The translations under genes were made by a program, and so were the position numbers. Positions 6,599 to 53,722 of a stretch of DNA of 64,000 nt are shown one piece after another. Each line of letters opens with the position of its first letter. The stretch's first letter is position 1. The notes beneath the pieces were generated by a model, which saw nothing but the letters and a program-made list of their open reading frames with translations, ran no database searches and was not told the origin of the DNA. The stretch is taken from the NCBI RefSeq assembly GCF_026571515.1, contig NW_026864070.1, positions 62,001 through 126,000 of the forward strand, read 5' to 3'. The DNA comes from Ruditapes philippinarum. Lineage: Eukaryota.

Positions 6599-9386
6599 AT
6601 GTCTGTAAGACGATTTTCCTTTTTCCTATACATGCTTTGTCCATTCATCATTCAAGTTGGAACCAAAAATGTCACGTGCCCTGCCTCATGTGAATGCGAC
6701 ACTTTCTTTGGAAAAAAAGAAGTAGGTTGTGCTAACCTCACTGATGTTCCGTCAAATATTCCCGAGGACACCAATTTGCTAGATTTAAGTGGGTGTAATA
6801 TATCCCACATTCATATTCAGCCGCTGGAAAAGCTCTTCAAATTACAAATCTTCACCTTTCAGGAAATAAATACAAATGATGAGAATTACAATCTTACAGC
6901 CTTGGACTTGCCACTTCTGAATGAAATAGTCGTCGATGGCGGCGTTTCAACTTCTATCCCACAGCTGTTACCATCTTATATTGGTACGCTTAGTGTTGCA
7001 TATAACAATCTAGGAACACTAAAGTCTGGTAGTTTTAAGAACTACCCAAACTTAGAAACGTTATTATTGTGGGACTGTATGTTAATGAAATTAGAAGCTG
7101 GTGTGTTGGATAATATTCCTTCTCTTTCAACACTTGAGTTTAATAGAAACAATCTAAAAGATGACAGTTTTCCGTTGGGCGTATTCAAGAAAAACCAAGC
7201 ACTTGACTCTGTTTCATTTTTTGCAAATGAATTGAAACACGTAGTGTCCAATCTTCCAAGTTCTGTTACAAGTGTCGATTACAGCGCCAATACCATATTT
7301 GAGCTTCGAGCTTACGACTTCAAATCTACGCCGAATCTGATATACCTGTATCTTCAACAGAATATGGTATGCAAATTTCTTTTAATATTAAAATGTCATC
7401 GTTGTTAGTTATACATGTATATAAAACCAGGCAAATATAACTCGCAAAACAAACAAACAAACAAACAAACGAAAACGCGAACAACCATAGAGATATTGCA
7501 GATATCGTAATTTCCTTATTTCATACCAAACAACAGCCCACAAACGTTATGTTTAAACCAGAGTTGCATTTGATGGGTTAGACATACTAATCTCGTTGGA
7601 TTTGAGTTACAATAACATCAATAAATTATAGCATCAGTGTAGTTGAAACTTATTAATTTTATTGCTTCAAATACACGTTAAAACCAGTGAACAAATTATA
7701 TCTACATATATATACAGTAAGTAAATTATGAGAGGGGTAACATGTTCTACTAACATTAGATTAAGTCCGTCGTAAGTAATGTACCCAAAACAAAAATGAA
7801 TCTGCATACATATAAACATAAAAATCTTTAAAAGTGGAGATCCCTCGAGAACAGTGAGGGGAAGTATTTTAAATATGTAAATTACAAACTCGGTTTAATT
7901 GAGTCTGATGGGAAGGGTAACGGTTTTCACTCCCCCTAGCACCGGCTTTAGCACATATCAATCTTCAACACCATTTAGTTTTAGAATCAGTGAGTGACCG
8001 CGAAGATGTAGAAAATTTCATAAAACTGAAATTAAGTAGGAACAGCTTATTACTACTGCCATACACCACTTGACATCTGGTGACCCAGGATATTTCATTG
8101 AATTTATTCAGACAGTGGCATTCAGTGTTGTGTTAAAGATAAAAAGTTAACAGCACTTTGTTAAGAGTCTCATATATTTATTGTATCCACATCAAAAGTA
8201 AAAAGCATCATATTGATAGCCAATACTATATGAGCTATTACGATACTTGTAATATATAAGTATTGATGAAAATACAGATCAGGACTCAATAGACCATATT
8301 GTTTTACCAGACTCCGTGTTCATCAGAATAAATCAAATAATTACCATTGTCCTTCCTCATAGATTAGATATCAACTTGAAAAAACTGTACTAGAAATAGC
8401 ATGCTTAGAATAAATTCATTGTTACATTTGCAAGGAATGGGAATTTACAGTTGATCTAAATACCGATCTTGATTCTAAAATTGATTCTTATTTTAATCCG
8501 TTATTTTGGTATCTGTTTTGTTATTCGTCCATTTCATGCAAAAATAGATTTTCTTTTTTGAATAGAGAAAATATTAATCCCTTACGAAAATCCAAAATGT
8601 CAAAATTGAAAATGTTGCAGAGTCGGTTTAATTGAGCATGTACAGTGCAAACTACCGTCCATGCCCCTAACACCGGCTTAAGTAGAATTCAACATTTAAA
8701 CATGAAATGGCAAAATTTTGAATTAATAAACATCCGCAGATGTATTCATATGGCGGTTATCATGAAATCATCATTTTATTACATTTTGAGTATGTACCAT
8801 TTAATTTTAGCAAAATTTAGGTCATTTTGAGTTTTATTGCACAGTGAAAATTTAGACAGGATCAGTTAATCCTGATATTTTCTAAGTGAACACAGGGCCT
8901 TCTACACTATGCATTTTCATTAAAATACGATATATCCATTATCGATTTATTATAATTTATTTGTTCTTCCGCATTTCTGCATGAAGCAGAACAATCACTT
9001 TTACATATTATTTTCAGATTAACCAGTTGAAGGACTTTACGTTTGCCGGCTTAACTTCACCTTTAGAGCTGAATTTGTCATATAACTGGATAACAGCCAT
9101 TGCCAAAGATGCATTCAAATCATTACAATCAAGCAAGATTGACCTCAGTTTTAATAAGTTACAAAGTCTTCAAGCTGAGGTTTTCTCTCATCTTACAAGC
9201 AGTGCTAATGTAAATCTGGGTGGCAACTTGTGGAATTGTGATTGTCACCTAAGATGGTTGAGAGAAGCACTAGACAATGCCACTTATACCATTGAGCTTC
9301 CGTACACTCTTAAATGTGCAACACCAGTCAAGCTCGCAGGAAAGTCTTTCATTGATCTTAAACCAAGCGATTTTGTGTGTATGTAG
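6599..9386 (+). CDS. Secreted LRR-only protein, copy A (predicted 378 aa; exons 6599-7366 and 9018-9386; exon 2 destroyed; one LRR deleted in exon 3)
   Basis: Signal-like N-terminus, LRRNT CPASCEC..EVGC, LxxLxLxxN repeats and LRRCT NLWNCDCHLRWL..CATP..FVCM*. Acceptor AG 6593-94, donor GT 7367, acceptor AG 9016-17; phase-0 join keeps the frame. Confidence 0.8.
7564..7648 (+). pseudogene. Relic of LRR exon 2 in copy A (acceptor and donor ends deleted)
   Basis: TTGCATTTGATGGGTTAGACATACTAATCTCGTTGGATTTGAGTTACAATAACATCAATAAATTA matches the interior of exon 24530-24745. The flanking TTTCAG and AAG|GTAAAT are absent. Confidence 0.8.
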
Positions 9387-10243
9387 GACAAAATTTCATT
9401 ATTCAAATAGATATTTTATATTTCAAATTTGAGCAGACTTTTATATGTAAATTGCTTAATCAGATAATAATTATGTACTAGACACACGGATTAGAAAACA
9501 TTGTTCAATGTTTCATACTTCATTTATTATTTTACGCTTTCCAGTCGGAGAGACAAGAGGCAATCTTCATAACGTAAAATATCTCTTTTTTCCGAACCAC
9601 ATTTTGAATGTGTAATACATCAATTACTACAATTTGCATGTTTGAAAACTTGTAAAAAATTAATACAGGCACAACAACATTGAAAAGATATAATATTGTT
9701 TTGAACCGAATACACAACTTTGCGAGTAACAATACAATATATTTAGAGTTTAAATTGATCCTGAGTTGCAATAACATATAATAATACTTAAAGTACTGAA
9801 TAAATGAGGTTTAGAAATTTTGAAAAATTTTGATTGTTGTATTCCTTGTATCATCCGGTAATTTTTTTTGGCCAGTGCTATAGTACGTGAGAGATGTTAC
9901 ACTTTCAGACTACTGAGTAAAGCCTAGTCCTCAATTTTATAGCTAGTATTTGTTGATGCTTTCAAGACAAAGGTCTATGTTCTTCATCATATAGTGCAAT
10001 TAGTGTTTTTGACATAATCTGAATAGATTTTGACGTCGTTTATGGCATCAAATGAATCGAATTGATCTTTATCAATTTTCGAAATCATCTCATGTTTAAT
10101 GCCGTTTTTCATACAACTGCAGGTGTTTTTGTTTTGTGGCACTTGTAAAAGTTGCTCCTTATTTCTCTCCAGTATAGTTATATTTTTTATATTTTGATAA
10201 TTCATTCTAATACTTCACTGTGTTGCTGTTTTGATAACGTTAA

Positions 10244-10827
10244 GGTAGTACACCCTAATGCACTATCTCCACTTTGAAGAGTATTTAAATAGGCTAGAAT
10301 CACTGTCAAGTGTATTGAAACACGGTAAAAGTATTTTATATTTTGCAAGACCAACCAATATACATTAAAGAAAATTTAGGCAAACTTTGAAAACAGCCCC
10401 TTATTGTGGAAAACTTTTGGGCTTTTGGGATATTTCAATTAAGGCTTTTTATGTAGGGAAATGGTCAAATAAGTGTTTAAAGGGGGTGGGGTAGGGTTAC
10501 AATTTTTTTTACATATTTAAAACATTTCGTTTAGGAACTATCATTTTGCTCGTTTAATTTGCTACCTGAATGTCATTATTTGTTTCTTAACAATGAGCAA
10601 TAGGAAAACATTTTTCATAACGATGTTATTACAGATTATTTAGAGTTTCCTGATTTCTGAAAAAAGCCCTTCTAATGGCAAAGTTTTAGTTCAGAAAAAT
10701 TCCCATAACTCATAAACCACATGGTAAATATTGTTTAAATTTTGCATACAGGTGACATTTAAGGCATATAACTGTCCTATGATGTCAATTTTACATTTCC
10801 TCATAGTGTCATTAGGGGTGTACTACA
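10244..10827. mobile_element. Non-autonomous TIR element with TTAA target duplication (Kolobok-like GG..CC ends), internally deleted
   Basis: TTAA|GGTAGTACACCCTAATG…CATTAGGGGTGTACTACA|TTAA. The empty site ATAACGTTAAT is seen at 20140 and 36160. Confidence 0.8.
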
Positions 10828-12735
10828 TTAATCCAGGTGCCACGGAACGTAGTGTCGTTACACTTTACTCTTTCTCTTAAGAACAAATTCCAGTACCGTC
10901 CATGAACAGACATAATAAAAAATGATGAAAAAAAATGAACACAATCCCCACATGACCAAGCAACAAAGGACTAGCGGCAAGGAGCCAAGCAGGACCCCCA
11001 ACAAAAAACAGGGTAGAGCACAAGGCAAACTGAGCCTGCATTGTTTAAATTTTGCCGTGTTTGCCGTTCTTCGGGGATTATGTTTTCCTCTCTTTCATAC
11101 AATTTCCGATACATCCCGTGTAAAGCTATATTTTTTACCATGGACATTCACCCTCGACATTATTTTAGCTCAAATGTTTTTTCTTTCTCTGTTAGTTTGT
11201 TGTTTTTTGGTTTTTTTTTTGTTTTTTTTTTGTGGGGTTGGGTAATTGTCAACTGTCCTTAACGAATAATTATTTTGCAATAAAGAATATGAATATTTTT
11301 ATAAAATATATTAAATCATACATATGCATAGTGTGTAGCTGGAATACAGATATAGTTACCCGCACTCCAGAGCATTGGCCCATTTTTTCTGAGGTTAACT
11401 TATTTGACAACAGAGATAAGGATAGCGATAGAAATATCGTATTCAAAACCTCGTTCATTGGTTTCTTTTTCTCAGGTTTCAACATTATTGTGACAACATG
11501 GAACGTGTTTTACTTTTTGCCTATGAAATAAAAGAGAAAAACATCAAAACACTGAGGAACAAATCAGATAGCCTCGAGTTTCGATGCTCTTTCTAGTATA
11601 TAACGTTTTCGAGGGCGTTTTTTTATGTCTCACAATACTTTATTTTGATGGTAATATAACATACAGAAGGTAATTGTTAAAACTGCATTATACACATTAT
11701 GTGAAATGACGTGAATTTTGACTAAATTCTTCAATCAGATTAATAGTTTACATATAGTAATTACAAAAGCAAAAACAACTACAACCACATTTTTAAGTCT
11801 TAATCCTACACATGCCATTTAAATTTTGAATATGTTCAATACAGAGATAGAATTAGCTTTTTTTACATTATATCAGTTTTAGTTTTGTTTTGCCAAGCAC
11901 ATTGGGTTACGAGTATATGAGCTTATAAACACGAGGTGTTAAATTGTACATACAGCATACCCTTAATTTAATGATAACGAAAAGTGTTTGTAGGTAATTA
12001 TTAAGAACAAAACATATACAATTAACTTAATGATAACGAAAACTGTGTGTAGTTAATTTGAAGGACATCTTTACCTTTCTAAAGCTGAACGTTTTGCATA
12101 ATTTATATACAATCAAGATATTATCGCCATTTTTATAACATATACTTTTGAAACATAATAATACTGCTTTACTATACTATTACATTTTATTTCTCTTCTC
12201 CTTGTCTATTATTTATATCTGTCACTCAAAGTTACTATAGTTCATTAAAAAAAATTATTGTTTACCCTTGACCTGCTGAATATTTGTAAAAGATTTATTC
12301 CGGTTCCAAGTCAATATTTGAACTGAGCCTGGTAAGACTACACGGATGTGCATGTTAGTCTGGATCTATACTGGTGACAAAGGGTTATCATTTTCAAGAC
12401 CAACAGGGAACACGTTAAGAATGTCTTATAAAATGTAATAATATGATGTTCAGTTATGTCCAACCTACTCAGTAGTTTGTAATGATATTGAATGACAGTG
12501 TACATATATTTTTTGTGTTTGTTTTTTGTCTGATAATTTCTCGTTTATAAATCTACTGAATTGTTAAGCAAAATAAGATGTTTTGTTACATATGATATAC
12601 TATACATAAATATTTGATACTTATTATTCATTATGTTTGTTCCTTTTCATAAATATTTTGATCCTATTTATAGATATTTTGTTTCTATCTATAGATATTT
12701 TGTTACTATTTATAGATGTTTGTTACTATTTATAG

Positions 12736-13777
12736 ATGTTCTTACATGGACGAAGATTAACAAAGGTGTATGAGGAGATAGGTATGGCCGTGTTACCTGA
12801 CGAGTATCTGCCTGATGATTATGAAGGTCCTAATGTCGGCTCATGTGAGAAAATAGTCGGTATATAGCTTTATTTGTGTATTTGTGTATTAGTAGGACAT
12901 TGATTCTCGAAAAAAGAAAACAACACAGAATATTTTACCTTCAAGACATATTGTCGAAAACCGTCAGTCTCTCCTCATTAGATAACAGATACAAAGTACA
13001 AGTTTGTAAAAAATAAGAAAGGTGAAAATTGGAGAAACACCAATTACCTTAGTATTTCCATGTTGGGCTTTCTTTAAGGATTCTTTTTTATTCTCTATAT
13101 TATTTTGTTGGTAGAAATTATGGCTATTCAAAGCATTGTTAATTAAAAGTGAGTTTATAAAGCATTCCTGGTCATTCATACAATCTATACATATTTAAAA
13201 GAAGTACCAGAAGCGACAGAAAGTATCACACTACCTATAACAGTATATTCAAACTATATTTATTGTATTGAGATGCTTTGCGTATATCACAGTTTTTTCA
13301 TAAGGAATTCAGCAAACTAATATTGGTAGATAAGCAAACTAAAATTGATAGATAATTATAAATTAATGATTGTTAAAATAATGAAAAAGTTCCGAGAAAA
13401 TAGTTAAACTAATTCTATAGATATAGACATTTATTGAAGATTTACTGGTAAGTATTTGTGACACGTATTGGCCAGCCTGTGTTCAAGTGTAAAAAGCATC
13501 TTTTATTTCCTCAATATTTTGAGAGCAAACATTTTGGAATATTTTGAACAAAAATTAGCTAGTGTGTTAACTCTTTGATTCATTCTACAAAATAGAGTGA
13601 CACATTTTCAGCGTTTGTTATATTTCATTGCAGTCAAAATGTTAGTAGACATGCAGAGCGATGTTTTTCGTGAATATATAAAACATCTCTCAAGTGACAA
13701 ATATGGGGTGGACCTAGAAGAACGTAAAAATTGCTGACACACCAGTTGCTTCGTTTAGAAAACTAAATATAGACTTG
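12736..13777 (+). pseudogene. 3' fragment (last two exons, 12736-12859 and 13634-~13777) of a CRAL-TRIO alpha-TTP/clavesin-like gene
   Basis: TATAG|MFLHGRRLTKVYEEIGMAVLPDEYLPDDYEGPNVGSCEKIV-G|GT, then TGCAG|..KMLVDMQSDVFREYIKHLSSDKYGVDLEERK(+1 frameshift)ADTPVASFRKLNID. Phases match (G+TC). The HG..LPxEY motif is typical of the CRAL-TRIO C-terminus. No upstream exons found. Confidence 0.75.
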
Positions 13778-14980
13778 CAAGATATTACACGTGAGACTCG
13801 TGCATTTTCGTTACAAGTATTAAAATGGGATTATTTGCATATCGTATATTATACATATATTAGAATTTGACAATGTTGCGATTAATTTTGTATTATGAAA
13901 AGTAACGTATGTCAATAAGGCTGAAAAACGTACCATAATACTTAAATCAATATAACAGGCTCGGAATATTTCAGAAGTTTAAATAGCTACATGAGGTACA
14001 AAACGTTACAACTGGTGACAAAAATGATAATGTTGTTAACATTTATGTTCATTATTTCTTATGTCCAGGAAAGATTCAACGATGCAAAATATATGTTTAT
14101 TTGAATGCAACTTTCTCCTGATTTTTATAATTGTCGTTTATTACGAACCCTACTTTTCATTTGAACATTTGTATTTTTATAAAGGCATGTAGTGAACTTT
14201 TATTAAGATTTAAGTAACCGGTACAATATGTCCCATTCTTTTTGCATTTCATTAGATAGGTTAAGGCATAAAATTCTTCAATTTTCAGATAGCCTTTTGA
14301 TGCTTAAGTGTCTGTTAATGTGTATGTGCTTCTAGTTTGTCCACTTAAACATTCTTTTCAATGTAAAAAAAAGTTACACCCCCCAAAAAAAAATTATACA
14401 CCTTTTATTGTTTGGTTATAAAAATCTCCTGCGATCTAGGCTATAATTTAGCTTTGTTTGTATCAAACTGTGGCCTATTTTAAATGTACTTTATACTTCT
14501 TCCGTATACATACCGTGTCAAACACTACATGATAGAAATTTAAATGTAGGTCAGACGCTAGCATTTATTTTCCCATAGACTTACATTATGAGAGATGGTC
14601 ACTTATCCCACATTAAATTTGAGCTTTCCTGCTGAAGAAGTGATTTTTCTAGGAGAATGAAATGCCTGACACATAAAAATGACAAATTGAATTGAAATTT
14701 TCTGCTGATCACTGGACTGACATGCACTGTTTATTAATGCAAATATCCAAGTAAAAAATAATCATAGAGAATCATGAAATATTTCATTTTCTTTAGAAAA
14801 CAATACAGTGTTAGATTCTAAATTAGTTTTCATACTTAAAAACATCCCATTTTCTTCCAATCACCTCATGTCCCACTGAATCTTATGGTTTTATGTACAG
14901 ATTCAATCAAACCATGTCTGCAATTCTCTTGTAATTTTGTTGTGATTAATACTTCCGAGGGATCACTTTGTTTCCAGATT

Positions 14981-15267
14981 TTTATACTTCACAACAGCAG
15001 GTGTCAAGTGCTGTGTGGCAGCTGTAAAAAGTTGCCCCGTTCTTCACTTCAGTGTTGTTATATTTTTCTGGTCCTTCGGGATCATAGATGCCAGCACTAT
15101 TAAGTGTTGAGAATTGAGTACCGCTCAAGCCGGTGCTAGGGGGCGTGAGGGATTTGCACGTATTCATTATCCCTCATGAACAGACTCAATCAAACCGAGA
15201 CTGCAATTCTCTTGTAATTTTGTTTTGATTAATGCTTCCGAGGGATCACTTTGTTTCCAGATTTTTT
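14981..15267. mobile_element. ~290-bp unclassified non-autonomous element (full-length copy, preceded by a partial copy at 14890-14980)
   Basis: Near-identical to the reverse complement of 52150-52440. Absent at the matching unit-2 position (~39830). Older partial copies lie at 3400-3630, 18070-18275, 25255-25470 and 30360-30580. Confidence 0.75.
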
Positions 15268-16448
15268 TTCTTTTTCCCTGCACTTTTTTAGCCAATCGCT
15301 GGCGATGTTGCAACGCAAAAGTATGACCTGCATTGGTTTTTTTTATTGTTTTAAGTGTATAATGCTGTATCTTATGAAATATTGCTATAAAATCATTCAA
15401 CAGTAAAATTATATTGCTGAATCTTATGATCCATTCTCGAAAGATTTGTAACATAGAATGCACACGGATAACGTTTTAATTAACAAACATTTTATAGTGT
15501 TGAAAAAATAGAAATCTATTTATTTACTTATTTACTTGTTTGTTTGATTATTTATTTATTTATTTATTTTCAAATTAAAGTAATACTCAGTATACAATCA
15601 AAAATCATTTATGATAAGTTTATCAATCTAAACAGCAAAACTTTCATTCAGCTTAGAAATACAAAACTTTGTGCAAAAAGCAATATTTTCTATTAATATT
15701 TTTTATCTCTTCTTTTTACAGTTTTTTGCATTTGTTTTTGAAAAGTACAAGTAGTTTTAACCGCTCCAAAATGTAAGAAACATTTTTAGTTTATCTGCAA
15801 ATGAAGTTAATTATAAAGAAACATTTTTTTAGATTTAAAACAAAATAACGGCGCGAGTGTTTGACCTTAAATATATAAAATTCAAGAATGCCATATTTTG
15901 TTTTGGTGTTACAACACTTTGTTTCTATATATTGGTTGTTATCAGCGTGAATTATTTTGATGATATGCGTTCCTAGATCCGCTGGTATTAGGCTTCAGGT
16001 ATTCCATTGATGTATATATTCTTTCATTTCATACATAAATAAAAGAGGAAGTCTTCTCCTATTTCTACAAATAGTTACTATGGAATTTTTCAGGCACGTT
16101 ACGCTTATTCTTTTAAGATTAAACAAAAGATATTCATTCTGCAAGTTTGAAACACAAAACGGATTATAAAATTGATGAGTATTTTCCAGTTTATTTAATA
16201 ATTTAACTCATCTCTCATCACATGTAAGTATTCTTTAAAACTATTTCTTTTTTCTCATTATTAAAACATACAATGTAAATTATTTAATTTAGACTGTTTA
16301 TAACAATGGTCATATATATGATTATACTATCTAAGATACCAAGCATACACCACCTTTTCATCATATGAAAAATATATCTCGAGCCCGATGATTCGAACAT
16401 TACAATTAATTTATACTGAAATAAACAAAAATGAAGAGTATGTTTAAT

Positions 16449-16740
16449 GAGACGTGCATGGCCGATAGAAGAGCACATGAGACCTTTCTCCACAAGTAAA
16501 GCTTATTAACCTCGAACCACTTGCCCTTCACCTCTGGGTTCCTATCTTACTATCAAACTAGCATATGGAATGTCTGTGGCTCTACTCAGGTGCCAGTTTG
16601 TGATTGAGATAATGTACAGAGGATCACATGAGGTCTTAAAGCTAGGGTTAGGGTTTACTTCAAACAGTCAAGCTGAAAAGTCGCCATATGACATTTACAA
16701 AGTGTCGGCGTGACTTAAACACAACAACAACAACAAGAAA
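16449..16740 (+). mobile_element. tRNA-derived SINE upstream of copy B
   Basis: Same family and same position relative to the acceptor as in the other five copies; (CAA)n tail. Confidence 0.65.
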
Positions 16741-16789
16741 AACATTATATTTATTTTAAAAATTCTGCTGTTTTTATATTTTCAGAACT

Positions 16790-23210: not shown

Positions 23211-23280
23211 AACATTTTTAAAAAAAGATATTTTTTTTCATTTATTTTAACAAATCGTCTGTTTTTATTTTTTCAGAACT

Positions 23281-40705: not shown

Positions 40706-41134
40706 ATTATGTGTTAAAGACTATTCAGATTCTAATCTAATATTGGAACAAAGCCTGGTAAAATTGCACTAATGTGGCATGTTAGTCTGGATCCATACTA
40801 GTGACAAAGGCTTTACATTTTCAGTCCTAACAGGGTACATGTTAAGAATGTCTTAAAAATTGTAATTATATGGTGTTCAGTTATGTTCAACCTACTCAGT
40901 AGTTTGTGACGATAAGGAATGACAATGTACATATATTTTGTATTTGTTTTTCATTCGTGTAGCATATCAGATTCAAAACTATGGTCATGCTTGTGTAAAA
41001 TTGGATCTGTAACCGTTCACAGGAAAAAGGAAATATTTTTATGATGACAAAAAGTTCACCCAGTAGGCACTCGGGTTACGTATTATTTACCAAACGTTTA
41101 ATAGTGTTGAATTCACGAATAAGAAATTGAAATT

Positions 41135-41160
41135 TATTTATCTATTTACTTGTTTGTTTG

Positions 41161-41196
<36 letters not shown>

Positions 41197-41290
41197 TTTG
41201 CTTATTTATTTATTTATTTATTCATTTATTTAATTATTTACTAGTTTGTTTGATTATTCATCTAATAGTATTTATTTATTAATTTATTTG
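41135..41290. repeat. (ATTT)n microsatellite
   Basis: Imperfect ATTT run. A shorter counterpart lies at 15520-15570. Confidence 0.85.
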
Positions 41291-42156
41291 CAAATTAAGG
41301 TCATACTCAGTATACAATCAACAATCATTTATGATAAGTCTATCTATCTAAACAGCACACACTTTCATTCAGCTTAGAAATACAAAAGATTGTGCAAAAG
41401 CAATAATTTTTTTATTAATGTTTTATCTCTTTTTATTACATTTTTTTGCATTTCTTTTGAAAAGTACAAGTAGTTTTAACTGCTCCAAAATGTAAAAAAA
41501 ACATTTTTGTTTATCTGCAAATGAAGTTAATTATAAAGAAGCATTTTTTTAGATTTAAAACAAAATATCGGTGGAGTGTTTGACCTTAAAAATCAAGTAT
41601 GCCGTATTTTGTTTTGGTAATACAACACTTTGTTTCAGTATATTGGTTGTTATCAGCGTGAATTATTTGGATGATGTGCGTTCCTAGATCAGTTGGTATT
41701 AGACTTCAGGTTTTCCATTAATTTATATATTCTTTAATTTCATACATATATAAAACAGGAAGTCTACTCCTATTTCTACAAATAGTTACTCTGGAATTTT
41801 CAGGCACGTAACGCTTATTCTTTTAAGATTAAACAAAAGATATTCATTCCGCAAGTTTGAAACACAAAACGGATTATAAAATTGATGTTTTTTTCCAGTT
41901 TATTTGATCATTTAACTCATCTCTCATCACATGCAAGTATTTTTAAAAACTTTTACTTTTTTCTCATTATTATAACATTCAATGTAAATTATTTACTATA
42001 GACTGTTAATAACAATTGTCATATATATGATTAAACTATTTAAGGTACCAAAGGATGCACCAGCTTTTCATCATTTGAAAAATATATCTCGAACCCGGTG
42101 ATTTGAACAATACAATTGATTGAAACTGAAATAAACAAAAATGAAGAGTATTTTTA

Positions 42157-42445
42157 TGGGGCGTCCATGTCCGATAGAAAAGCACATGAGGTCTTTCTAA
42201 ACCAGTAAAGCTGATTAGGCTCGTTGACTTCGAACCACTTGCCCTTCACCTCTGGGTTCCAATTTTGCTATCAAACTAGCATATGGAACGTCTGTAGCTC
42301 TACTCAGGTGTCCGTTTGTGCTTGAGATAATGTACAGAGGACCACATGACGTGTTCTTCAAACAGTAAAGCTGAAAAGTTGCCATATGATATTTATAAAG
42401 TGTCGGTATGACTTAAACACAACAACAACAACAACAACAACAAAA
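42157..42445 (+). mobile_element. tRNA-derived SINE upstream of copy B'
   Basis: Duplicate of 16449-16740 with a (CAA)n tail. Confidence 0.65.
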
Positions 42446-42489
42446 CATATTCATTTTAACAATTCTGCTGTTTTTATATTTTCAGAATT

Positions 42490-45400
42490 ATGTCTGTAAG
42501 ACGATTTTCCTTTTTTCTATATATGCTTTGTCCGTTCATCGTTCAAGCTGTAACTAAAAATGTCACGTGTCCTGCCTCATGTGAATGCGACACTTTCTTT
42601 GGAATGAAGGAAGTAGATTGTGCTAACCTCACTGATATTCCGTCAAATATTCCCGAAAACACCAATTGGCTAGATTTAAGCGGGTGTAATATATCCCACA
42701 TTCATATTCAACCTCTGGAAAAGCTCTTCAAATTACAAATCTTCACCTTTCAGGAAATAAATACAAATGAAGAGAATTACAATCTTACGGCCCTGGACTT
42801 GCCACTTCTGAATGAAATAGTCGTCGATGGCGGCGTTTCTACTTCTATCCCACAACTGTTACCATCTTATATTGGTGCGCTTAGTGTAGCATATAACAAT
42901 CTAGGAACTCTAAAGTCTGGAAGCTTTAGGAACTACCCAAACTTAGAAACGTTAAGTTTGTGGGACTGTATGTTAACGGAATTAGAAGCTGGTGTGTTGG
43001 ATGATATTCCTTCTCTTTCCTCACTTGAGTTCAATAGCAACAATCTAAACGAAGACAGTTTTCCTTTGGACGTATTCAAGAAAAACCAAGCACTTGACTC
43101 TGTTTCATTTTTTGATAATGAATTGAAACACGTAGTGTCCAATCTTCCAAGTTCTGTTACAAGTGTCGATTACAGCGACAATGCCATTTTTGAGCTTAGA
43201 GCTTATGACTTCAAATCTACGCCGAATCTGATATACTTGTATCTTCAACAAAATATGGTATGAAAATTACTGTTCATGTGAAAATGTCGTCATTGTTATA
43301 TATATATACTTATATATAAAACCATGCATATAATTCTTTCAAAAGAATTGCAAAACAAACAAAAACACATAGAAAGCATAAATAAACATAGCGATATCTG
43401 TCTTTTTCTTACTACACTCATGTTTTGGCAATTATTAAATCACAAAATGTCACGTTTAGTCATTTGATTACTAGATTTTACAAGAACGATATTTTTACAA
43501 AGGAGTATTAGTAAATGTAAACGACCATGAAGTTATTACATTTATTAAAATTTCCTTAGCTCATACCAAGGTATCCACAAACAACAGTCTACAAATGTTT
43601 ATACCAGTGTTGAATATAAATATTACAACGTTTATTTCAGATCACAAATGTTGAAGACTTTGCTTTTGATGGGTTAGACAAACAAATTTCGTTGGATATG
43701 AGTTACAATAACATCAATAAATTAAGCAGAAACACATTAGCTGGGTTAACAGGAGTCTATGAATTACATATGAGTGGTAATAACATCAGTGTCGTAGATA
43801 AAAATGCATTTAGACAACTCGTCTCTGTAAATGATCTCAAACTAGATCAAAACAAGGTAAATATTACAAAGACTCCTCTTGATGAAACTTATTTCTTTTT
43901 ATAGCTTCAAATACACGAAATAACCAATATATAAATAACAACAACACGTAAACATCAAAATATTGGTTGGGTTACCATGGCAGAGTTATGCCCCTTTTAC
44001 TTTGAAAATAATATGAAATTTTCAGTTTCCGTCCATTATCTCCCCAACGGTACAACACATTCAACTCAAACTTGACAAATGGATATGTCATGAGAATTCG
44101 AATTTGGTCATGGTTTGATGATTTTTGGCAGAGTTATGCCCCTTTTACTTTGAAAATAATATGAAATTTTCAGTTTCCGTTCATTATCTCCCCAACGGTA
44201 CAACACATTCAACTCAAACTTGACATATGGATATGTCATGATAAAATACAGGTCAAGTACGATTTTGGTTATGGTTCAATGATTTTTTGCAGAGTAATGT
44301 CCCTTTTACTTTGAAAATAATGTGAAATTTTCAGTTTCTGTTCATTATCCCCAATAGTGTTACATATTCAACTCAAATTTGACATATGGATATGTCAAAG
44401 GAATGCGCAGGTCAAGTTGGAATTTGGTCATGGTTCGATGATTTTTGGTAGAGTTATGTCCCTTTCACTTTGAAAATAATTTGAAATTTTCAGTTTCCAT
44501 TCGTTATCTCCTCTAGGGTATTACACATTCAACTCAGATTTGACATATGGATACGTCAAAGGAATGCACAGGTCAAGTTTGAATTTTGTCATTATTCAAT
44601 GATTTTTTTGCAGAGTTATGCCCCTTTAACTTTGAAAGAAAAGAAATTTTCAGTTCCCTTTCATTATCTCCCCAACATATTCAACTCAAATTAAAGATAT
44701 GGATATGTCATAAGAATGCATTGGTCAATTTCGAATTTAATCATGGTTTGATGATAGCTGGCAGACTTATCTCTCTTGAACTTTGAATTTTAAGTTTACG
44801 TTCATTATCTCCCCAATGGTTGTACACATTCAACTTAAATTTCACATATAGATACATCTTAGGAATAAGCAGTTCAAGTTTGAATTTGGTCGTGGTTCAA
44901 TGATTTTGGACAAACTTATCTTTCTTGAATGTTGGAAAAATTTTGAATTTTCAGTTTCAGCACTCATACTTTTGTGGAAATGTATGTGGCCATTATTTTG
45001 GCTACAAATATGCAATATGCAATTTACAAAAGGTTAAGACTGAATAATTTCAGTGCCTTTAACAGTGTATAACAATGGTTTATGTTAACATTGAATAGTT
45101 TTAAGGTCTTGGCATGATGACACATTTCTAGTTAATACTCTATTATACAAGATAATAACGAACAACATTTCATAATTCTATTTTTTGTCATGTTATTAAT
45201 AGAGTACATTTATTGTATCCACTATCCACAAAAAAGTAAGTAAAATATCATATTGATGCATACATATGTGTTTACTATCATTATTAAAATTTGAGTTGGT
45301 ACACTACTTTTATTCTAAGAGTAGTTTCGAAGTGAATATAAGTATTGATACAAAATCAAATCATATAGACCATACTATAATACCTGTTTCTAAACTCATG

Positions 45401-45939
45401 CATGTTCATTAATATTCTTATATCATTATACTATCAACTATTTGTCCTTCCGCATTTAATCATGAAGCAGAACAATCATATTTACATAATATTTTCAGAT
45501 TGTACAGTTGGAGGACTTTACCTTTCAAAGCATGGTCGATTTACAAAACCTGGACATGAGTTACAACAATTTATCTGCAGTTACTAATAATACTTTTGCC
45601 GGGTTAACCTCACTTTTGTGGTTCAACTTGTCATATAACTGGATAACAACCATTGCGCAAGATGCATTCAAATCACTCAAATCAAGCGACATTGACCTCA
45701 GTTTTAATAGGTTACAAAGTCTTCAGGTTGAGGTTTTCTCTCATCTTACAAGCACAGCTAATGTAAGACTAGCTGGCAACTTGTGGAATTGTGATTGTCA
45801 CCTAAGATGGTTGAGAGAAGCACTGGACAATGCCACTTATACCATTGAGCTTCCGTACACTCTCAAATGTGCAACACCAGTCAAGGTCGCAGGAAAATCT
45901 TTCATTGATCTTAAACCAAGCGATTTTGTGTGTATGTAG
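42490..45939 (+). CDS. Secreted LRR-only protein, copy B', intact full-length form (474 aa; exons 42490-43257, 43641-43856, 45499-45939)
   Basis: Exons of 768, 216 and 441 nt are all open, with phase-0 GT-AG introns. Signal peptide, LRRNT, ~16 LRR strands, LRRCT, and a stop right after the last Cys-Met. Confidence 0.88.
43980..44960. repeat. ~160-bp tandem array (~6.5 copies), Helentron/HINE-like internal repeats, in the last intron of B'
   Basis: Units begin CAGAGTTATGCCCCTTT at about 43981, 44129, 44290, 44450, 44610, 44762 and 44910. Absent from the other copies. Confidence 0.8.
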
Positions 45940-46560
45940 GACAAAATTTCATTATTCAAATAGATATTTTATATGTCAAATTTGAGCAGACTTTTATATG
46001 TAAAATGCTTAATCAGATAATAATTATGTACTAGACACACGGATGGGAAAACATTGTTCAATGTTTCATACGTCATTTATTATTTTACGCTTTCCGTCGG
46101 AGAGACAAGAGGCAATCTTCATAACGTAAAATATTTCTTTTTTCCGAACCACATTTTGAATGTGTAATACATCATATCAAATACTACAATTTGCATGTTT
46201 GAAAATTTGTAAAGAATTATACAGGCACAACAACATTGAAAAGATATAATAATTTTATAGCTAGTATTTGTTGATGCTTTCAAGACAAAGGTCTATGTTC
46301 TTCATCATATAGTGCAATAAGTGTTTTTGACATAATCTAATAGACTTTGACGTCGTTTCTGGCATCAAATGAATCGAATTGATTCTTATCAATTTTCGAA
46401 ATCGTCTCATGTTTAATGCCGTTTTTCATACAACTGCTGGTGTTAATGTTTTGTGGCACTTGTAAAAGTTGCCCCTTATTTCTCTCCAGTATAGTTATAT
46501 TTTTTATATTTTGATAATTCATTCTAATACTTCACTGTGTTGCTGTTTTGATAACGTTAA

Positions 46561-47354
46561 GGTAGTACACCCCTAATGCACATTCTCCACTTTGAAGAGT
46601 ATTTAAATAGGCTCGAATCACTGTCAAGTGTATTGAAACTGAGGGGTGTGGGTTCAAACCCCAGAAGGGGCAACTTTTTTTCTTTCTTTTTTTTCTTTTT
46701 AATATTTTTTATGAATTTCTCAGATCCCAAATGGAAGAAAAAAAGTGTTTAATTTTAATTATATAATTATTGTAGGTATTTATTTGCTAAAAAATGCCAA
46801 ATTTAATAGCAAATATGATACCAGATATTTTTAAAGTTTAATAAAATAAATACTACACGGTAAAAGTATTTTATATTTTGCCAGCCCAACCAATATACAT
46901 TAAAGAAGATTTAGGCAAACTTTGAAAACAGCCCCTTATTGTGGAAAACTTTTGGGATATTTCAAATAAGGCTTTTTACGTAGGGAAATGGTCAAATAAG
47001 TGTTTAAAGGGGGTGGGGTAGGGTTACAATTTTTTTTTACATATTTAAAACATTTCGTTTAGGAACAATCATTTTGCTCGTTTAATTTGCTACCTGAATG
47101 TCATTATTTGTTTCTTAACAATGAGCAATAGGAAAACATTTTTCATAACGATGTTATTACAGATTATTTAGAGTTTCCTCATTTCTGAAAAAAGCCCTTC
47201 TAATGGCAAAGTTTTAGTTCAGAAAAATTCCCATAACTCATAAACCACATGGTAAATATTGTTTAAATTTTGCATACAGGTGACATTTAGACATATAACT
47301 GTCCTATGATGTCAATTTTACATATTCTCATAGTGTCATTAGGGGTGTACTACC
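46561..47354. mobile_element. Non-autonomous TIR element with TTAA TSD (Kolobok-like), longer copy
   Basis: TTAA|GGTAGTACACCCCTAATG…CATTAGGGGTGTACTACC|TTAA. Same insertion site context as 10244-10827. Confidence 0.85.
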
Positions 47355-49019
47355 TTAATCCAGGTGCCACGGAACGTAAGTGACGCTACACTTTACTCTA
47401 TCTCTTAAGAACAAATTCCAGTACCGTCCATGAACAGACATAATAAAAAATGATGAACAAAATGAACGCAATCCCCACATGACCAAGCAACAAAGGACTA
47501 GCGGCAAGGAGCCAAGCAGAACCACCAATAAAACAGGGTAGAGCACAAGGCAAACTGAGCCTGCATTGTTTTAAATGTTGCCGTGTTTGCCGTTCTTCGG
47601 GGATTATGTTTTCCTCTGTTTCATACAATTTCCGATACATCCCGTGTAAAGCTATCTTTTTACCATGGACATTCACCCTCGACATTATAATAGCTCAAAT
47701 ATTTTTTCTTTGTCTGTTTGTTTGTTGTTGTTTTGTTGGGGGTTGTGGGGCGGGGTAATTTTAAGTCAACTGTCCTTAACGAATAACTATTTTACAATAA
47801 AGGATATGAATATTTTTATAAAATATAGTAAATCATACATATGGACAATGTGTTAGCTGGAATACGGATAAAGTTACCCGCACTCCAGAGCATTGGCACA
47901 TTTTTTCTGATGTTTACTTATTTGACAACAGATAAAAGGTTAGTAATAGAAATATCGTATTCAGAACCTCGTTCATTGGTTTCTTTTTCTCGGGTTTCAA
48001 CATTATTGTGACAACATGGAACGTGTTTTACTTTTTGCCTATGAAATAAAAGAGAAAAACATCAAAACACTGAGGAACAGATCAGATAGCCTCGAGTTTC
48101 GATGCTCTTTCTATTATATAACGTTTTCGAGGGCGTTTTGTTATGTCTCACAATACTTTATTTTGATGGTAATATAACATACAGAAGGTCATTGTTAAAT
48201 CTGCATTACACACATTATGTGAAATGACGTGTATTTTGACTACATTCTTCAGAGTAATAGTTTACATAAAGTTTTGACAACAGCTACAATAACTACAACC
48301 TCATTTTTTAAGTCAAGCCATTTAAAATATAAAAGAATCCATTCAATAATGAAATATGAGAGACTATGTCAAGATATATAATTATTAAATTTAATGATAA
48401 AGAAAATTGTGTGAAGTCATTTTTTAAGGACATCTTTACCTCTTTAATGGATAACGTTTTGCATAATATATATACAATCAAGACATTATCGCCGGTTTTA
48501 TAGCATATACTTATTGAAACATAATTATACGGCTTTACTATACTGTTACATTTTATTTCTCTTCTCCCTGTCTATTATTTATATCTGTCACTCACGGTTA
48601 CTATGGTTCACTGAAATAAAAAAAAAATATTGTTAACCCTTGACCTGCTGAATATTTATACAAGAAGTCAATATTGGAACTGAGCCTGTTAACACTCACG
48701 ATATGCTTGCTAGTCTGATTCTATACTAGTGACAAAGGCTTAACATTTTCAGTTCCAACAAGGTATAGGTTAAGAATGTCTTCTGAAATGAACATAAGAC
48801 CTGTTCAATGTTTGTAACGATATTGAATGACAGTTTTTTTGTGTTTGTGTTTCATATATCAGGTTCAAACCTATGACTATGCTTGTGTAAAATAGCACAA
48901 CATGGAAATTATGTAATATATTGTACTAGTTTGGAAGGCAGAGCCAATTTTCACCTATTAGACACATGTTTTAATTAACACAATAATAGTGTTAGATTCA
49001 CGAATGATAAATAGAAATT

Positions 49020-49143
49020 TATTTATTATTTATTTATCTATTTACATTTTTATTAAAAAAGTTATGTATTTATTTATTAATTTATTTATATTAATTTATT
49101 CATTGATTCATTTATTTATTTATTTATTCATTCATTCATTCAT

Positions 49144-49178
<35 letters not shown>

Positions 49179-49210
49179 TTTGTAAATTGACATTCATTTA
49201 TTTATTTACT
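49020..49210. repeat. (ATTT/ATTC)n microsatellite
   Basis: Direct inspection. It explains the low-complexity ORF 48989-49300. Confidence 0.9.
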
Positions 49211-49981
49211 TTCATTCAGCTCAGAAATTATATACAAAAATATTTACGAATGCAATCTGTTTTGATCTCTTATCACATTTTTTACATTTGTTTTGGCTAG
49301 AACTTCAGAAAAGGTAGTTTTTAACCACTCCAAAATATTAGAAACATTTTATTTCATCTGCAACAGAAGTTAATTATAAACATATATTTTTTTTAGATTT
49401 TAAACAAAATAACGGCGGAGTGCATGAATTCCATATTTTGTTTTGGTAATAAAACACTTTGTTTTTGTATATAAGTTGTTATCAGCGTACATTATTTTGA
49501 TGATATGCGTTCTTAGATTCATTGGTATGAGGCTTCGGGTTTTTCGTTGACAAAGGTATAAATTGTTTAAGTTCATACATTAATAACCCGGCAAGTTTTC
49601 TCCTATTCATATAAATAGTTACGTTGGAATTTTCAGGCTTATTCTTTGAATGTCAAGCAAAAGGTTTTCATTCCGCAAGTTTGAAACACTAAACTGATAT
49701 AAAGTTGTTGTTTTAACTGTTTAGTGGATAATTCAACTACCAAAATTTAGCTAATCTATCACATGCAAGTATACTTTTTAACTATTTCTTTCTTTTTTTT
49801 ATTATTATAACAGTATTATTTGATTCAGACTATAAATGAAAAAGATCATAAGATATGTTACTTTAAAGGTAACACGGCTCTATACCACCTTTTCATCATT
49901 TGAAAAATATCTCTCGAAGCCGCTGACCTGAAAATTACAAATAGTTTGAAACTAAAACACACAAAAATGTAGACTATTTTA

Positions 49982-50242
49982 TGGGATGGGGATCCGTGGC
50001 CTAGAGTTAAAGATTGTTGTCTTCGAACCGCTGACCCCACACCTGTGGGTTCAAATCTTACCAGGGACTTCGGATTTTTTTATGTGAGGAAGCTATCCAG
50101 CTAGCTTATGGAACGTCGGTGGCTCTACTCGGGTGCCTGCTTATGCCTTAAATAATGTAAGGAGGGGCACATGATGTCTCCCTTAACCGGTAAAGCTGAA
50201 AAGTCGCCATATGTCCTTTAAAGTGTAGGTGTGACTTAAACC
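49982..50242 (+). mobile_element. tRNA-derived SINE upstream of copy C'
   Basis: Duplicate of 22942-23210. Confidence 0.75.
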
Positions 50243-50300
50243 ATTTAAAAAAAAATTTCATTTATTTTAACAAATTGTCTGTTTTTATCTTTTCAGAACT

Positions 50301-53300
50301 ATGTCTTTTAGACGATTTTCCTGTTTTCTATACATGCTTTGTCCGTTCATCGTGCAAGCTGTTACCAAAAATATCACGTGTCCTGTTCTCATGTGAATGT
50401 GAAACTATCTTTGGCGCAAAGGAAGTTAGATTGTTATAACCTCACTGATGTTCCATCAAATATTCCTGAGGACACAATTACCTAGATTTAAGTGGGTGTA
50501 ATATATCCCACATTCCTATTCAGCCACTGGAAAAGCTCTTCAAAATTACAAAAAGGTCGCCTTTCAGGAAATAAATACAAATGAGGAGAATTACAATCTA
50601 AAGACCCTGAACTTACCACTCCTGAATGAAATAGTCGTCGATGGCGGCGTTTCAACTTCTATCCCACAACTGTTACCACCTTATATTTAGTACGCTTAGC
50701 GTAGCAGAAAACAATCTAGGCACTCTAAAAGTCTGGTAGCTTTAGAAACTATCCAAACTTAGATTCGTTATTTTTGTCGGACTGTATGTTAACGAAATTA
50801 GAAGCTGGTGTGTTGGATGATATACCATCTCTTTCATTACTTCAGTTCAATGACAACAATCTAAACGAAGATAGTTTTCCTTTGGACGTATTCAAGAAAA
50901 ACCAAGCACTTGACTCTGTTTCATTTTTTGATAATGAATTGAAACACGTAGTGTCCAATCTTCCAAGTTCTGTTACAAGTATCGATTACAGCGGCAATGC
51001 CATTTTTGAGCTTAGAGCTTATGACTTCAAATCTACGCCGAATCTGATATACTTGTATCTTCAACAAAAATATGGTATGAAAATTACTGTTCATGTGAAA
51101 ATGTCGTCATTGTTATATATATTTATATATAAAATCATGCATAAAATACTATTGCAAAACAAACCAACAAACATAGAAACCATAAATTAAAATATCGTTA
51201 TCTGTCTTTTTTTCTTACTGAATTGAGGTTTTTGAAAATTATTAAATTATAAAATGGCACGGCTAGTCATTTGATTACTAAGATTTTACAAAGAACGATA
51301 TTTTACAAAGGAGTAGAAACTTAACGAAAACGCAAACGACTATGGAGTTATTTTTTAAAATTATTAGAATTTTCCCTTGCTCATACCAAGGTCTCCACAA
51401 ACATCAGTCTACAAATGTTATGTTTATACCAGAGCTGAATATATTACCAACGTTTATTTCAGATCACAAATGTTGAAGACTTTGCGTTTGATGGGTTAGA
51501 CAAAAAACAAATCTCGTTGGATATGAGTTACAATAACATCAATAAATTAACGGGAAACACATTAGCTGGGTTAACAGGAGCGTATGAATTACATATGAGT
51601 AGTAATAACATCAGTGTTGTGGATAAAGATGCATTTAGACAACTCGTCTCTTTACATGATCTCAAACTAGACCAAAACAAGGTAAATATTAAAAAGAATC
51701 CTCTTGATTAAACTTATTTTATTTTATTGCTTCAAATACACCTAATAACCTATATAAAAATTACAACAACATGTAATATATTGGTTAGGTTACAAGTTCT
51801 TCTAACACTAGATAAAGCCCTTCGTATGTCATGTACCCAAGACAAAATTGTGTCTGCATACAAATAAACAAACAAATCGGACAGAAGGGAGATCTCTCGA
51901 GAGCAATGAAAAGAAGCAGTTGTCCCTTGTCCCTTATGGGCCCCTTTTAGTTTTTATCATTTCACTTATTTCATGCCCCTCCCCTCCTTTCGCCACCCTT
52001 GATTCATCTACCGATTTGTTTCGGTGCCTTCTGGATGCCCTGATGTTGAAGCTGAGGTGTTGGGGGGCTGCGTCCTGTGAAGGTTGCCTTTGCCTTGTTG
52101 ATCTTTGTTCTCGTTTGTTTTCTCATTTAATTACATGTGATGGAATGTGTAAAAAATTCTGGAAACAAAGTGATCCCTCGGAAGCATTAATCACAACAAA
52201 ATAACATAAGAATTGCAGACTCGGTTTGATTGAGTCTGTACATGAGGGATTATGTATAAGTGCAACATCCCTCACGCCCCCTAGCACCGGCTTGAGCGGT
52301 ACTCAATTCTCAACACTTTATAGTGTTGGCATCAATGATCCCGAAGGACCAGAAAATATAACAACACTGAAGTGAAGTACGGGGCAACTTTTTACGGCTG
52401 CCACACGGCACTTGACACCTGCTGTTGTGAAGTACAAAATTTTTCTCACGTCCCATAAGAACGGCTCAGTGTTGTTATATTTTTCTGGTACTTAGGTATC
52501 ATTGATGCCAGCACTTTTAAGTGTTGAGAATTGAGTACTTGCTCAAGCCAGTGCTAGGGCACGTGAGGGATGTTGCATTCATTCATTACCCCCATGTACA
52601 GCTTTAGTCAAACAAAGTCTGCAAATTTTCATGTAATTCTTGTTGTAATTAAGTCTTCGAGGGATAATTTTGTTTTCCAGATTTTTAAGCATAAACAACC
52701 TTCAACACCATTATGTTTTTGCATCTGTTAGTGAACGCGTAGGTTAAAGACAAAAAACTCTTTTACTAAACTGAAGTAAAGTAAGAGCATTTCTTAAACC
52801 TGCTTTACAAGCACTTGACAACATGCTGACTCCATGAAATTACATGATTGAATTGAGACAGACAGTAACATTCAGTTTTGTTGTTAAATGTTCAAAAGTT
52901 AGCAGCACTATTGTTAAGACTCTGTTATACAAGATAATAACGAACAACATTTCATAATTCTATTTTTTGTCATGTTATTAATAGAGTACATTTATTTTTC
53001 CAGCTATTTCCCCAAAATTAATTTAAAATTGAATTTTATTGATCCCAAAAATATTTTGATTACTATCATTATTAAAATTTGAGTTGATACAATACTTTTA
53101 TTCTAAGAGTAGTGTCGAAGTGAATATAAGTATTGATACAAAAACAAATTATATATACTATTACACAAGTTTCTAAACTCATGCATGTTTATTAATATTC
53201 TAAAATAAATCTCTAATAAACTAATTGTCCTTCCGCATTTAAGCAAGAAGCAGAACAATCATATTTACATAATATTTTCAGATTGCACAGTTGGAGGACT

Positions 53301-53722
53301 TTACCTTTCAAAGCATGGTCGATTTACAAAACCTGGACATGAGTCACAACAATTTATCTGCAATTACTAATGATACGTTTGTCGGGTTGACTTCACTTTT
53401 ATGGTTGAATTTGTCATATAACTGGATTACAACCATTGCCCAAGATGCATTCAAATCATTGCAATCAAGCGACATTAACCTCAGTTTTAATAGGTTACAA
53501 AATCTGAAAGCTGAGGTTTTCTCTCATCTTACAAGCACAGCTAATGTAAGACTTGCTGGCAACTTGTGGAATTGTGATTGTCACCTAAGGTGGTTGAGAG
53601 AAGCACTGGACAATGCCACTTATACCATTGAGCTTCCGTACACTCTCAAATGTGCAACACCAGTCAAGCTCGCAGAAAAGTCTTTCATTGATCTTAAACC
53701 AAGCGATTTTGTATGTATGTAG
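50301..53722 (+). pseudogene. LRR copy C' (exons 50301-51074, 51463-51681, 53282-53722); exon 1 frameshifted as assembled, possibly a real gene with consensus errors
   Basis: About 7 single-base indels in exon 1, mostly homopolymer length changes (GAAGTTAGA, CAAAATT, TATATTTAG, CTAAAAGTC, CAAAAATATG). Splice sites are intact; exon 2 (+3 nt, in frame) and exon 3 are open. Confidence 0.65.
52150..52440. mobile_element. ~290-bp non-autonomous element inserted in the last intron of C'
   Basis: Absent in copy C (25223 GTGTAAGTTTTCTCACG). Reverse complement of 14981-15267. Confidence 0.8.

Follow-up and report, generated by a model that had tools for sequence, protein, structure and literature searches.

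What are the tandem genes in this stretch of the Ruditapes philippinarum genome, and does the variation among them amount to a recognition system? The window, i.e. the whole stretch of 64,000 nucleotides that was analyzed here, corresponds to positions 62001-126000 of the 145,137-bp scaffold C12557 and contains an array of genes for secreted proteins of the leucine-rich repeat (LRR)-only kind. The initial annotation, which was made from the sequence alone, had read this array as six tandem paralogues and as a candidate soluble recognition system resembling the agnathan VLRs. Our analysis indicates that the genes are probably a young tandem expansion, belonging to the Ruditapes lineage, of soluble, N-glycosylated, capped LRR-only binding proteins that undergo birth-and-death evolution.

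Self-comparison of the window together with tblastn identified six head-to-tail paralogues on the + strand (copies A to F). This agrees with the six secreted LRR-only copies proposed initially, with one correction: open frames occur only in A, B and E, and copies C, D and F are frameshifted. The features of the array are as follows (window coordinates).

6599..7366, + strand: copy A, exon 1, with predicted signal peptide, LRRNT and LRR1-9 start; intact
7566..7628 (scaffold 69566-69628), + strand: copy A, fossil middle exon in the intron, residues 8-28 of the exon, 86% identity
9018..9386, + strand: copy A, last exon, with a 72-nt in-frame deletion (one LRR fewer), LRRCT and stop
16790..17557, + strand: copy B, exon 1; intact
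18851..19291, + strand: copy B, last exon and stop; the middle exon is deleted
23281..24046, + strand: copy C, exon 1; a 2-nt deletion close to the 3' end shifts the frame as assembled
24530..24745, + strand: copy C, middle exon with three LRRs; open
26057..26497, + strand: copy C, last exon; open; the NCBI model (XP_060565145, 232 aa) comprises exons 2-3 alone
33533..34307, + strand: copy D, exon 1, with a 7-nt insertion and frameshift; pseudogene
34520..34649 (scaffold 96520-96649), + strand: copy D, middle exon, preserved as two fossil pieces
34924..35285, + strand: copy D, last exon; carries the 72-nt deletion of the A type and a 10-nt deletion (frameshift)
42490..43257, + strand: copy E, exon 1; intact, with RNA contigs over it
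43641..43856, + strand: copy E, middle exon (LRR10-12); both junctions GT..AG in RNA contigs
45499..45939, + strand: copy E, last exon and stop; RNA coverage continues as 3' untranslated region (UTR) to at least 46251
50301..51074, + strand: copy F, exon 1, disrupted by seven frame-breaking indels; either a pseudogene or poorly polished sequence
51463..51681, + strand: copy F, middle exon; open; apart from one additional codon it matches the middle exon of the upstream copy U2 at 100% identity (see below)
53282..53722, + strand: copy F, last exon; open
358..54500, + strand: block of about 27 kb with three genes, present in two copies (A, B, C, then D, E, F); boundaries approximate
21987..22132, no strand: assembly gap between B and C; its flanks are collinear with the second block, which has about 160 bp in its place
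24067..24229, no strand: assembly gap within intron 1 of C; its first base is 21 nt past the end of exon 1 (24046)

The paralogues have a common layout: a predicted signal peptide, an LRRNT with four cysteines, the LRRs, an LRRCT with four cysteines and a stop. Coding exon 1 has 768 nt and runs from the ATG to the codons for QQNM, which are followed by the donor GTATG in phase 0. The optional middle exon (216 nt, 72 aa) encodes three LRRs; it begins with ATCACA after the acceptor TTTCAG and ends with CAAAACAAG before the donor GTAAAT. The last exon starts with ATT, also after TTTCAG, and ends with the residues PSDFVCM, so that the stop lies one residue past the final cysteine of the LRRCT. All of the coding junctions are in phase 0 and occur at the same repeat position, after the N-x of the motif LxxLxLxxN-x. 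The exons therefore comprise whole numbers of LRRs, and for this reason modules can be dropped without breaking the frame. A conserved acceptor, TTTTCAG, is found 4 nt 5' of each ATG (window 6594-6598, 16785-16789 and 42485-42489, and at the same place in every copy); it also occurs in a related gene on scaffold C15416. The presence of this acceptor before every ATG implies an upstream non-coding 5' exon.

The lengths of 378, 402 and 474 aa that had been predicted for the family are correct and belong to A, B and E, respectively. Copy A has 256+122 = 378 aa and 12 LRRs. Copy B, with 256+146 = 402 aa and 13 LRRs, is identical to the NCBI protein XP_060565146 ('LRRC70-like'), and copy E, with 256+72+146 = 474 aa and 16 LRRs, is identical to XP_060565143 ('IGFALS'). 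NCBI models five genes on this scaffold, and the genes of the array are already annotated; the names IGFALS, slit-like and LRRC70-like are labels of similarity. Neither of the two gaps touches coding sequence. The flanks of the gap at 24067-24229 are collinear with E and F, which have 63-76 bp there; an open reading frame (ORF) at 23281-24261 that spans this gap is an artefact.

In Pfam searches LRR_8 (PF13855) was found in every exon with E values of 1e-10 to 1e-22, and all of the families found were of the LRR class. The LRRCT family PF01463 scored 19.4-21.2 bits, against a cut-off of 20. The LRRNT family PF01462, which is recorded for some of the relatives, had no match in the window exons at E<0.01. 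The cysteines of both caps (C27, C31, C33 and C44; C426, C428, C452 and C473) are invariant in 24 family members. By inspection of the sequence, the N-terminus has two arginines and a hydrophobic core of 13 residues, followed by VQA ahead of the putative mature end. This stretch is the sole hydrophobic window in the protein, and nine N-x-S/T sequons follow it. No transmembrane helix, TIR domain, stalk, glycosylphosphatidylinositol (GPI) signal or coiled coil was found in the copies; the protein ends at the LRRCT, and in relatives as in all copies the stop comes one residue past its last cysteine. The claim that there is no transmembrane, TIR or GPI tail is thus upheld by the hydrophobicity scan, by the stop after the LRRCT and by RNA that runs through the stop into the 3' UTR.

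AlphaFold2, supplied with an alignment of 24 sequences, predicted a horseshoe of 16 strands with a mean pLDDT of 90 and a pTM of 0.84; the strands lie at positions 3-5 of each of the 16 assigned repeats. The best Foldseek matches of this model were LRIG1, Drosophila Toll, TLR5 and the Nogo receptor. By sequence the best match in the PDB was IGFALS (7wrq, E=3e-46), which was local over a few stretches. As modeled, the fold is of the generic extracellular capped-LRR type.

Transcription and splicing of the genes agree with the prediction. The RNA evidence consists of reads and contigs aligned to copy E, namely two contig sets from independent studies (X1, presumably RNA, and X12) and two runs of raw reads (X21 and X23). 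RNA contigs cover the three exons of E, and none lies over intron 1 or over the 3' portion of intron 2. Both GT..AG joints, 43257 to 43641 and 43856 to 45499, are present in RNA contigs, and the coverage extends without a break past the stop as far as 46251, which gives a 3' UTR of at least 310 nt. Among the joints listed for E there is none to a downstream exon, and none that skips exon 2 (43257 to 45499). The exon reads in X21 are sparse; their first mates are mostly on the minus strand, as is the case for + strand RNA in most stranded libraries. Intron 2 of E also contains a tandem repeat at 43980-44907 with a period of 161/320 bp (3-5 copies, 76-78% matches). It is very deep in all four RNA runs (word depth of up to 87,000 in contigs, about 300 in raw reads) with zero depth in the flanking intron, and it is probably a dispersed transcribed repeat or SINE-like element outside the mRNA of the gene.

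Next we consider how the array came about. The region from about 358 to 27400 is repeated at about 27482-54500 with 85-94% identity including the intergenic DNA, and A, B and C correspond to D, E and F. The array continues beyond the window: a search of the whole assembly and of the rest of the scaffold gave a total of ten copies on the scaffold, four of which lie upstream.

Scaffold C12557:18801-60286: four upstream copies, U1-U4

Copies U1, U2 and U3 are open three-exon genes of 474 aa; U1 is XP_060565147 and U2 is XP_060565148. Copy U4 is disrupted by numerous one-base indels as well as by a stop codon. Six of the ten scaffold copies (U1-U3, A, B and E) have open frames and four are broken. 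U1 and U2 together form a third pair of the B type and C type, and U1 is 94.5% identical to E over 4.7 kb including the introns. This block pattern fits unequal crossing-over between tandem units. Two further copies, both broken, lie on the minus strand at the end of scaffold C10525 (215920-225872). One is of the A type with a truncated exon 1; the other, H2, has three exons and has a 1-nt deletion and the stop codon in common with U4. These copies are possibly an alternative haplotype (haplotig) of the U4 region.

The deletion of 2 nt in C lies 18 nt upstream of the exon-1 donor. The seven indels in exon 1 of F comprise six of one base and one of two bases, mostly changes of homopolymer length in short runs; they may reflect poor polishing of a repeated region. 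The NCBI model of D is a fragment of 157 aa.

The copies also differ in modules. In A and D the middle exon is gone, fossil pieces of it are left in the intron, and the two copies have the 72-nt deletion in the last exon in common. Copy B lost the middle exon independently of A and D, because its nearest relatives, E and U1, retain it. Intron 1 of A contains about 1.1 kb (7646-8722) that have no counterpart in D or in the other copies and that are likely a recent insertion.

Two kinds of evidence indicate that sequence has been exchanged between copies. Identity is mosaic: between E and U1 it is 99.3% for the LRR portion of the last exon versus about 94% elsewhere, and between F and U2 it is 100% for the middle exon and 99.2% for the 3' half of exon 1, versus 93% overall. 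In addition, a PHI-like permutation test on four-gamete incompatibilities gave P=0.003 for exon 1 of nine copies and P<0.0005 for the six three-exon copies. Three of the initial proposals are supported. Repeat number varies in that phase-0 modules, such as the three-LRR exon or a single 72-nt LRR, are lost whole; genes are born and die; and copies exchange sequence.

To which proteins are the copies related? The searches used single exons and the two NCBI proteins that equal B and E. The closest protein from another species is XP_053398360 from Mercenaria ('slit homolog 1-like', 476 aa), which is 42% identical and has the same C-terminus. The next are proteins of about 410 aa with 31-40% identity from Mya, Mercenaria, Ostrea, Ruditapes, Lingula and amphioxus, all with the same caps. 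The vertebrate relatives in the protein search are 23-29% identical, and the nearest relatives are the invertebrate proteins of about 410 aa; among the names that relatives carry are IGFALS, CPN2, platelet GP V and phospholipase A2 inhibitor-like. On scaffold C15416 of Ruditapes (533870-541109) there is a single open three-exon gene of 479 aa with the same phase-0 structure and about 50% identity to the array; no annotated protein for it was among the matches of the protein search.

In the phylogenetic tree the array forms a clade with a support of 100/100, a long stem and a very short crown. This clade is sister to the C15416 gene and Mercenaria XP_053398360 (support 95/92), and it is nested inside the old family of proteins of about 410 aa. 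The sister grouping identifies the C15416 gene as a conserved one-to-one orthologue and the array as an expanded offshoot. Like the array genes, the C15416 gene and its Mercenaria counterpart have three exons in phase 0, 16 LRRs and the C-terminus PSDFVC; unlike them they are single-copy, one-to-one orthologues, with 42-52% identity to the array copies. The C15416 type thus appears to be the conserved parent type and the array its faster-evolving offshoot. No Mercenaria counterpart of the array was among the proteins found, which were annotated proteins only, and, apart from the array's own, no cluster with more than 50% identity came out of an exhaustive HMMER search with exon 1.

The variation among the copies was then related to the structure of the repeat. 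All copies were projected on the codons of E, and sites were classified by repeat position as strand core (1, 4, 6, 9), concave x (2, 3, 5, 7, 8), convex core (11, 14, 19, 22), other convex x, and caps. The ratio of nonsynonymous to synonymous substitution rates (dN/dS, or omega) was calculated by the pooled Nei-Gojobori method for the six open copies, with pairwise counts that are not phylogenetically independent.

All sites: dN/dS 0.36
Concave x: dN/dS 0.65
Convex x: dN/dS 0.35
Strand core: dN/dS 0.20
LRRCT: dN/dS 0.05

Variable sites were more frequent on the concave side (31/80) than on the convex side (36/163; Fisher P=0.009). Three or more residues occurred at 11 concave versus 4 convex sites, and these sites were densest in LRR4-6. 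The strand-focused variation that had been noticed from the sequence is thus confirmed as an excess of replacements at the x positions of LxxLxLxxN, with a nearly frozen LRRCT. The description of the family as rapidly diversifying, in contrast, was not borne out: the open copies are 88-95% identical in protein, dN/dS is 0.36 overall, and the omega of 0.65 for the concave class has a bootstrap confidence interval of 0.33-1.29. Positive selection was not found; the concave patch of LRR4-6 has an omega of about 1.0, but it was chosen after seeing the data. The caps are under strong purifying selection. The concave face, above all in LRR4-6, is most likely diverging under relaxed or weakly diversifying pressure.

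These results suggest the following course of events. The ancestral form would have had 16 LRRs, three coding exons and phase-0 splice sites. The array may have grown by unequal crossing-over, in which the block of about 27 kb with A, B and C gave rise to that with D, E and F, and the U1/U2 pair arose upstream. The A/D lineage and B would each have lost the three-LRR exon in a separate event, and the A/D lineage one more LRR, while gene conversion or recombination presumably keeps shuffling segments between copies. The products would be extracellular binding proteins with somewhat different ligand specificities.

Several observations weigh against this account. Evidence for the frameshifts in C, F and U4 comes from a single draft assembly of 15,874 contigs; many of these lesions are changes of homopolymer length and could be sequencing errors, and the number of copies could be inflated by haplotypes that were misplaced in tandem. 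The dN/dS ratio is below 1 in every class of sites and the difference in omega between the concave and convex classes is marginal (one-sided bootstrap P=0.086), so that relaxed constraint could explain the pattern. The raw-read runs X21 and X23 have almost no exon coverage at 95% likeness. Finally, one RNA contig (43148-43812) joins an exon 1 like that of E (1 difference in 109 nt) to a divergent exon 2 (10 in 173 nt), in which the differences are of the U2/F type, for example GCA>CGG at 43726-43728. Transcripts can therefore not be assigned to a single copy. Possible sources of the mixed contig are an allele, a copy missing from the assembly, a recombinant, or a chimera of paralogues within the contig.

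If the copy number were an artefact, divergent haplotypes of a shorter locus would have been concatenated. In favor of this, the assembly is of draft quality and has gaps within the array, the genomes of bivalves are highly heterozygous, and the lesions that H2 has in common with U4 look like those of a haplotig. Nevertheless, the blocks differ by 6-15% and also in structure (B is without an exon that is present in E, and the insertion of about 1 kb in A is absent in D), B-type/C-type pairs occur three times on one scaffold, and NCBI models five genes there, all of which makes such an artefact quite improbable. The array might also be real and yet the product of neutral birth and death in a region prone to duplication, with redundant copies, weaker constraint on the exposed concave residues after duplication and tolerated losses of modules. 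The dN/dS ratios below 1 and the wide concave interval would be expected in this case, as would the proportion of broken copies, the very young crown of the clade and a region rich in repeats and duplicated blocks. What neutrality explains less well is that the convex x positions, although exposed as well, are only half as variable, that sites with at least three states are concentrated in LRR4-6, and that six intact copies maintain their caps under strong constraint. We regard neutral birth and death as possible but doubtful.

Another explanation is that the proteins are humoral carriers or inhibitors, i.e. soluble horseshoes that stabilize or neutralize proteins, with the copies tracking different partners such as algal or pathogen toxins or proteases. 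IGFALS, carboxypeptidase N subunit 2, LRG1 and the snake phospholipase A2 inhibitor beta are precedents for such a role. The best PDB match by sequence, the names given to the relatives and the same secreted, capped, LRR-only architecture all point in this direction. However, identity to these proteins is only about 23-30%, orthology is not shown and the names are similarity labels; furthermore, lineage-specific tandem expansions with pseudogenes are commoner among genes that face the environment than among hormone carriers. Taken together this explanation seems rather unlikely. Far less credible, and in our opinion very unlikely, is a germline bank of VLR-like cassettes in which all copies, including the broken ones, exchange sequence and thereby generate soluble-receptor repertoires that are specific for the individual. 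It is true that copies do exchange sequence, that the phase-0 modular exons all join at one LRR position, that pseudogenes are kept in the array and that one RNA contig combines an E-type exon 1 with a U2/F-type exon 2. Yet each intact copy is complete with ordinary GT-AG introns, a stalk or GPI anchor is missing, protein differences between the copies amount to only 5-12%, an allele, an unassembled copy or a chimera can account for the mixed contig, and nothing points to somatic change.

We therefore return to a young expansion of soluble capped LRR-only binding proteins as the probable explanation of the locus. By analogy with bivalve LRR-only pattern-recognition receptors, the likeliest role of these proteins would be humoral recognition of non-self, which we propose tentatively, as its chances are somewhat below even. 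Binding of endogenous proteins or of toxin proteins, in the manner of the acid labile subunit, CPN2 or PLI-beta, would come next. A more far-reaching version is improbable as a whole: modular exons, crossing-over and conversion, with the broken copies as donors, would create a germline repertoire that varies between individuals in copy number and in the binding face, and this variation would serve recognition of pathogens or of allogeneic cells as an analogue of the VLRs at the level of the population.

The DNA between the genes contains additional repeated elements. Paired ORFs of 108 aa with a YIDD motif are located at 4716-5042 and 31644-31970, which places them 5' of A and of D within the duplicated block; they resemble a fragment of a reverse transcriptase and have no Pfam match. 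A repeated element of 1-1.8 kb with 85-94% identity occurs downstream of A, B, D and E (10825-12612, 20138-21366, 36157-37952 and 47352-48388). It has short ORFs on both strands, one of which was scanned and had no match in Pfam. Arrays of tandem repeats are present at 29544-30132 and 56119-57009; the period of one is a multiple of 31 bp (94% identity) and that of the other about 170 bp (73-75%). A Pfam scan of five intergenic ORFs of the window (class of at least 100 aa) gave no match and no TIR domain.

Large lineage-specific expansions of recognition genes, including TLRs, C1q proteins and lectins, are known in bivalves. Secreted LRR-only recognition proteins are also already known in these animals, and the locus does not represent a new category of immune system. 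It is rather a compact and well-resolved case of family growth and of change in repeat number, in which fossil exons show the loss of modules and a conserved single-copy sister gene can be used as a control. The three intact length variants with 12, 13 and 16 LRRs are natural material for relating LRR number and the variable LRR4-6 patch to ligand binding. If the immune role is true, the locus could mark disease resistance in the farmed clam.

How does the array compare with known systems? A literature search found no paper on this locus, and the terms Manila clam and 'acid labile subunit' gave nothing relevant. The agnathan VLRs resemble the clam proteins in their capped solenoid, whose concave sheet would bind the ligand, in the variable number of LRRs and in the variation at the x positions of the strands. 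In contrast, VLR genes are incomplete in the germline, are assembled somatically from flanking cassettes and encode a stalk with a GPI anchor, while the clam genes are complete, are spliced conventionally at GT-AG introns, end at the LRRCT and have a diversity of 5-12% among about six germline copies. Membership in the VLRs is ruled out by the complete germline genes, by introns that are removed in RNA and by the lack of a Thr/Pro-rich stalk and GPI tail, so that the term VLR-like holds for the architecture only. The identity of a Toll-like receptor is ruled out as well, since there is no second hydrophobic window and since the stop and the 3' UTR lie in the last LRR exon.

In insects, LRIM1/APL1 and leureptin are LRR immune factors that are secreted into the haemolymph, and the APL1 locus is tandemly duplicated and polymorphic. 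LRIM and APL1 differ from the clam proteins, which end at the LRRCT, in having a C-terminal coiled coil and a Cys motif for the formation of heterodimers. The analogy with LRIM/APL1, which had been drawn initially, fails on this tail; the model has no long C-terminal helices, and this rules out membership. Manduca leureptin is a weak match (24% identity, E=2e-11) and has no specific sequence relationship to the array. A similar layout is found in the vertebrate proteins IGFALS, CPN2, LRG1 and the ectodomain of platelet GP V, which are soluble glycoproteins with a signal peptide, an LRRNT, 13-20 LRRs and an LRRCT; IGFALS itself has about 20 LRRs and acts in a ternary complex with IGF and IGFBP. 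These proteins are single-copy, conserved and have defined endogenous partners, whereas the clam genes form a lineage-specific array with about 25% identity to them and no orthology shown.

The nearest parallel comes from another bivalve. In the scallop Chlamys farreri, CfLRRop-1 to -6 are described as receptors for pattern recognition, which were proposed or shown to bind lipopolysaccharide, peptidoglycan, glucan and poly I:C, to modulate haemocytes and to induce effectors (PMC5877582). The LRR-only category of proteins is in use for shrimp as well. The CfLRRops and the clam proteins are both molluscan, LRR-only and present as several paralogues, and the CfLRRops are a system of the kind that the initial annotation had proposed. 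The CfLRRops, as they have been described, have 1-4 recognized LRR domains, while the clam proteins are set apart by 12-16 LRRs, both caps and an origin in a young tandem array. On the strength of this comparison the clam array is best viewed as an uncharacterized addition to the LRR-only proteins of bivalves.

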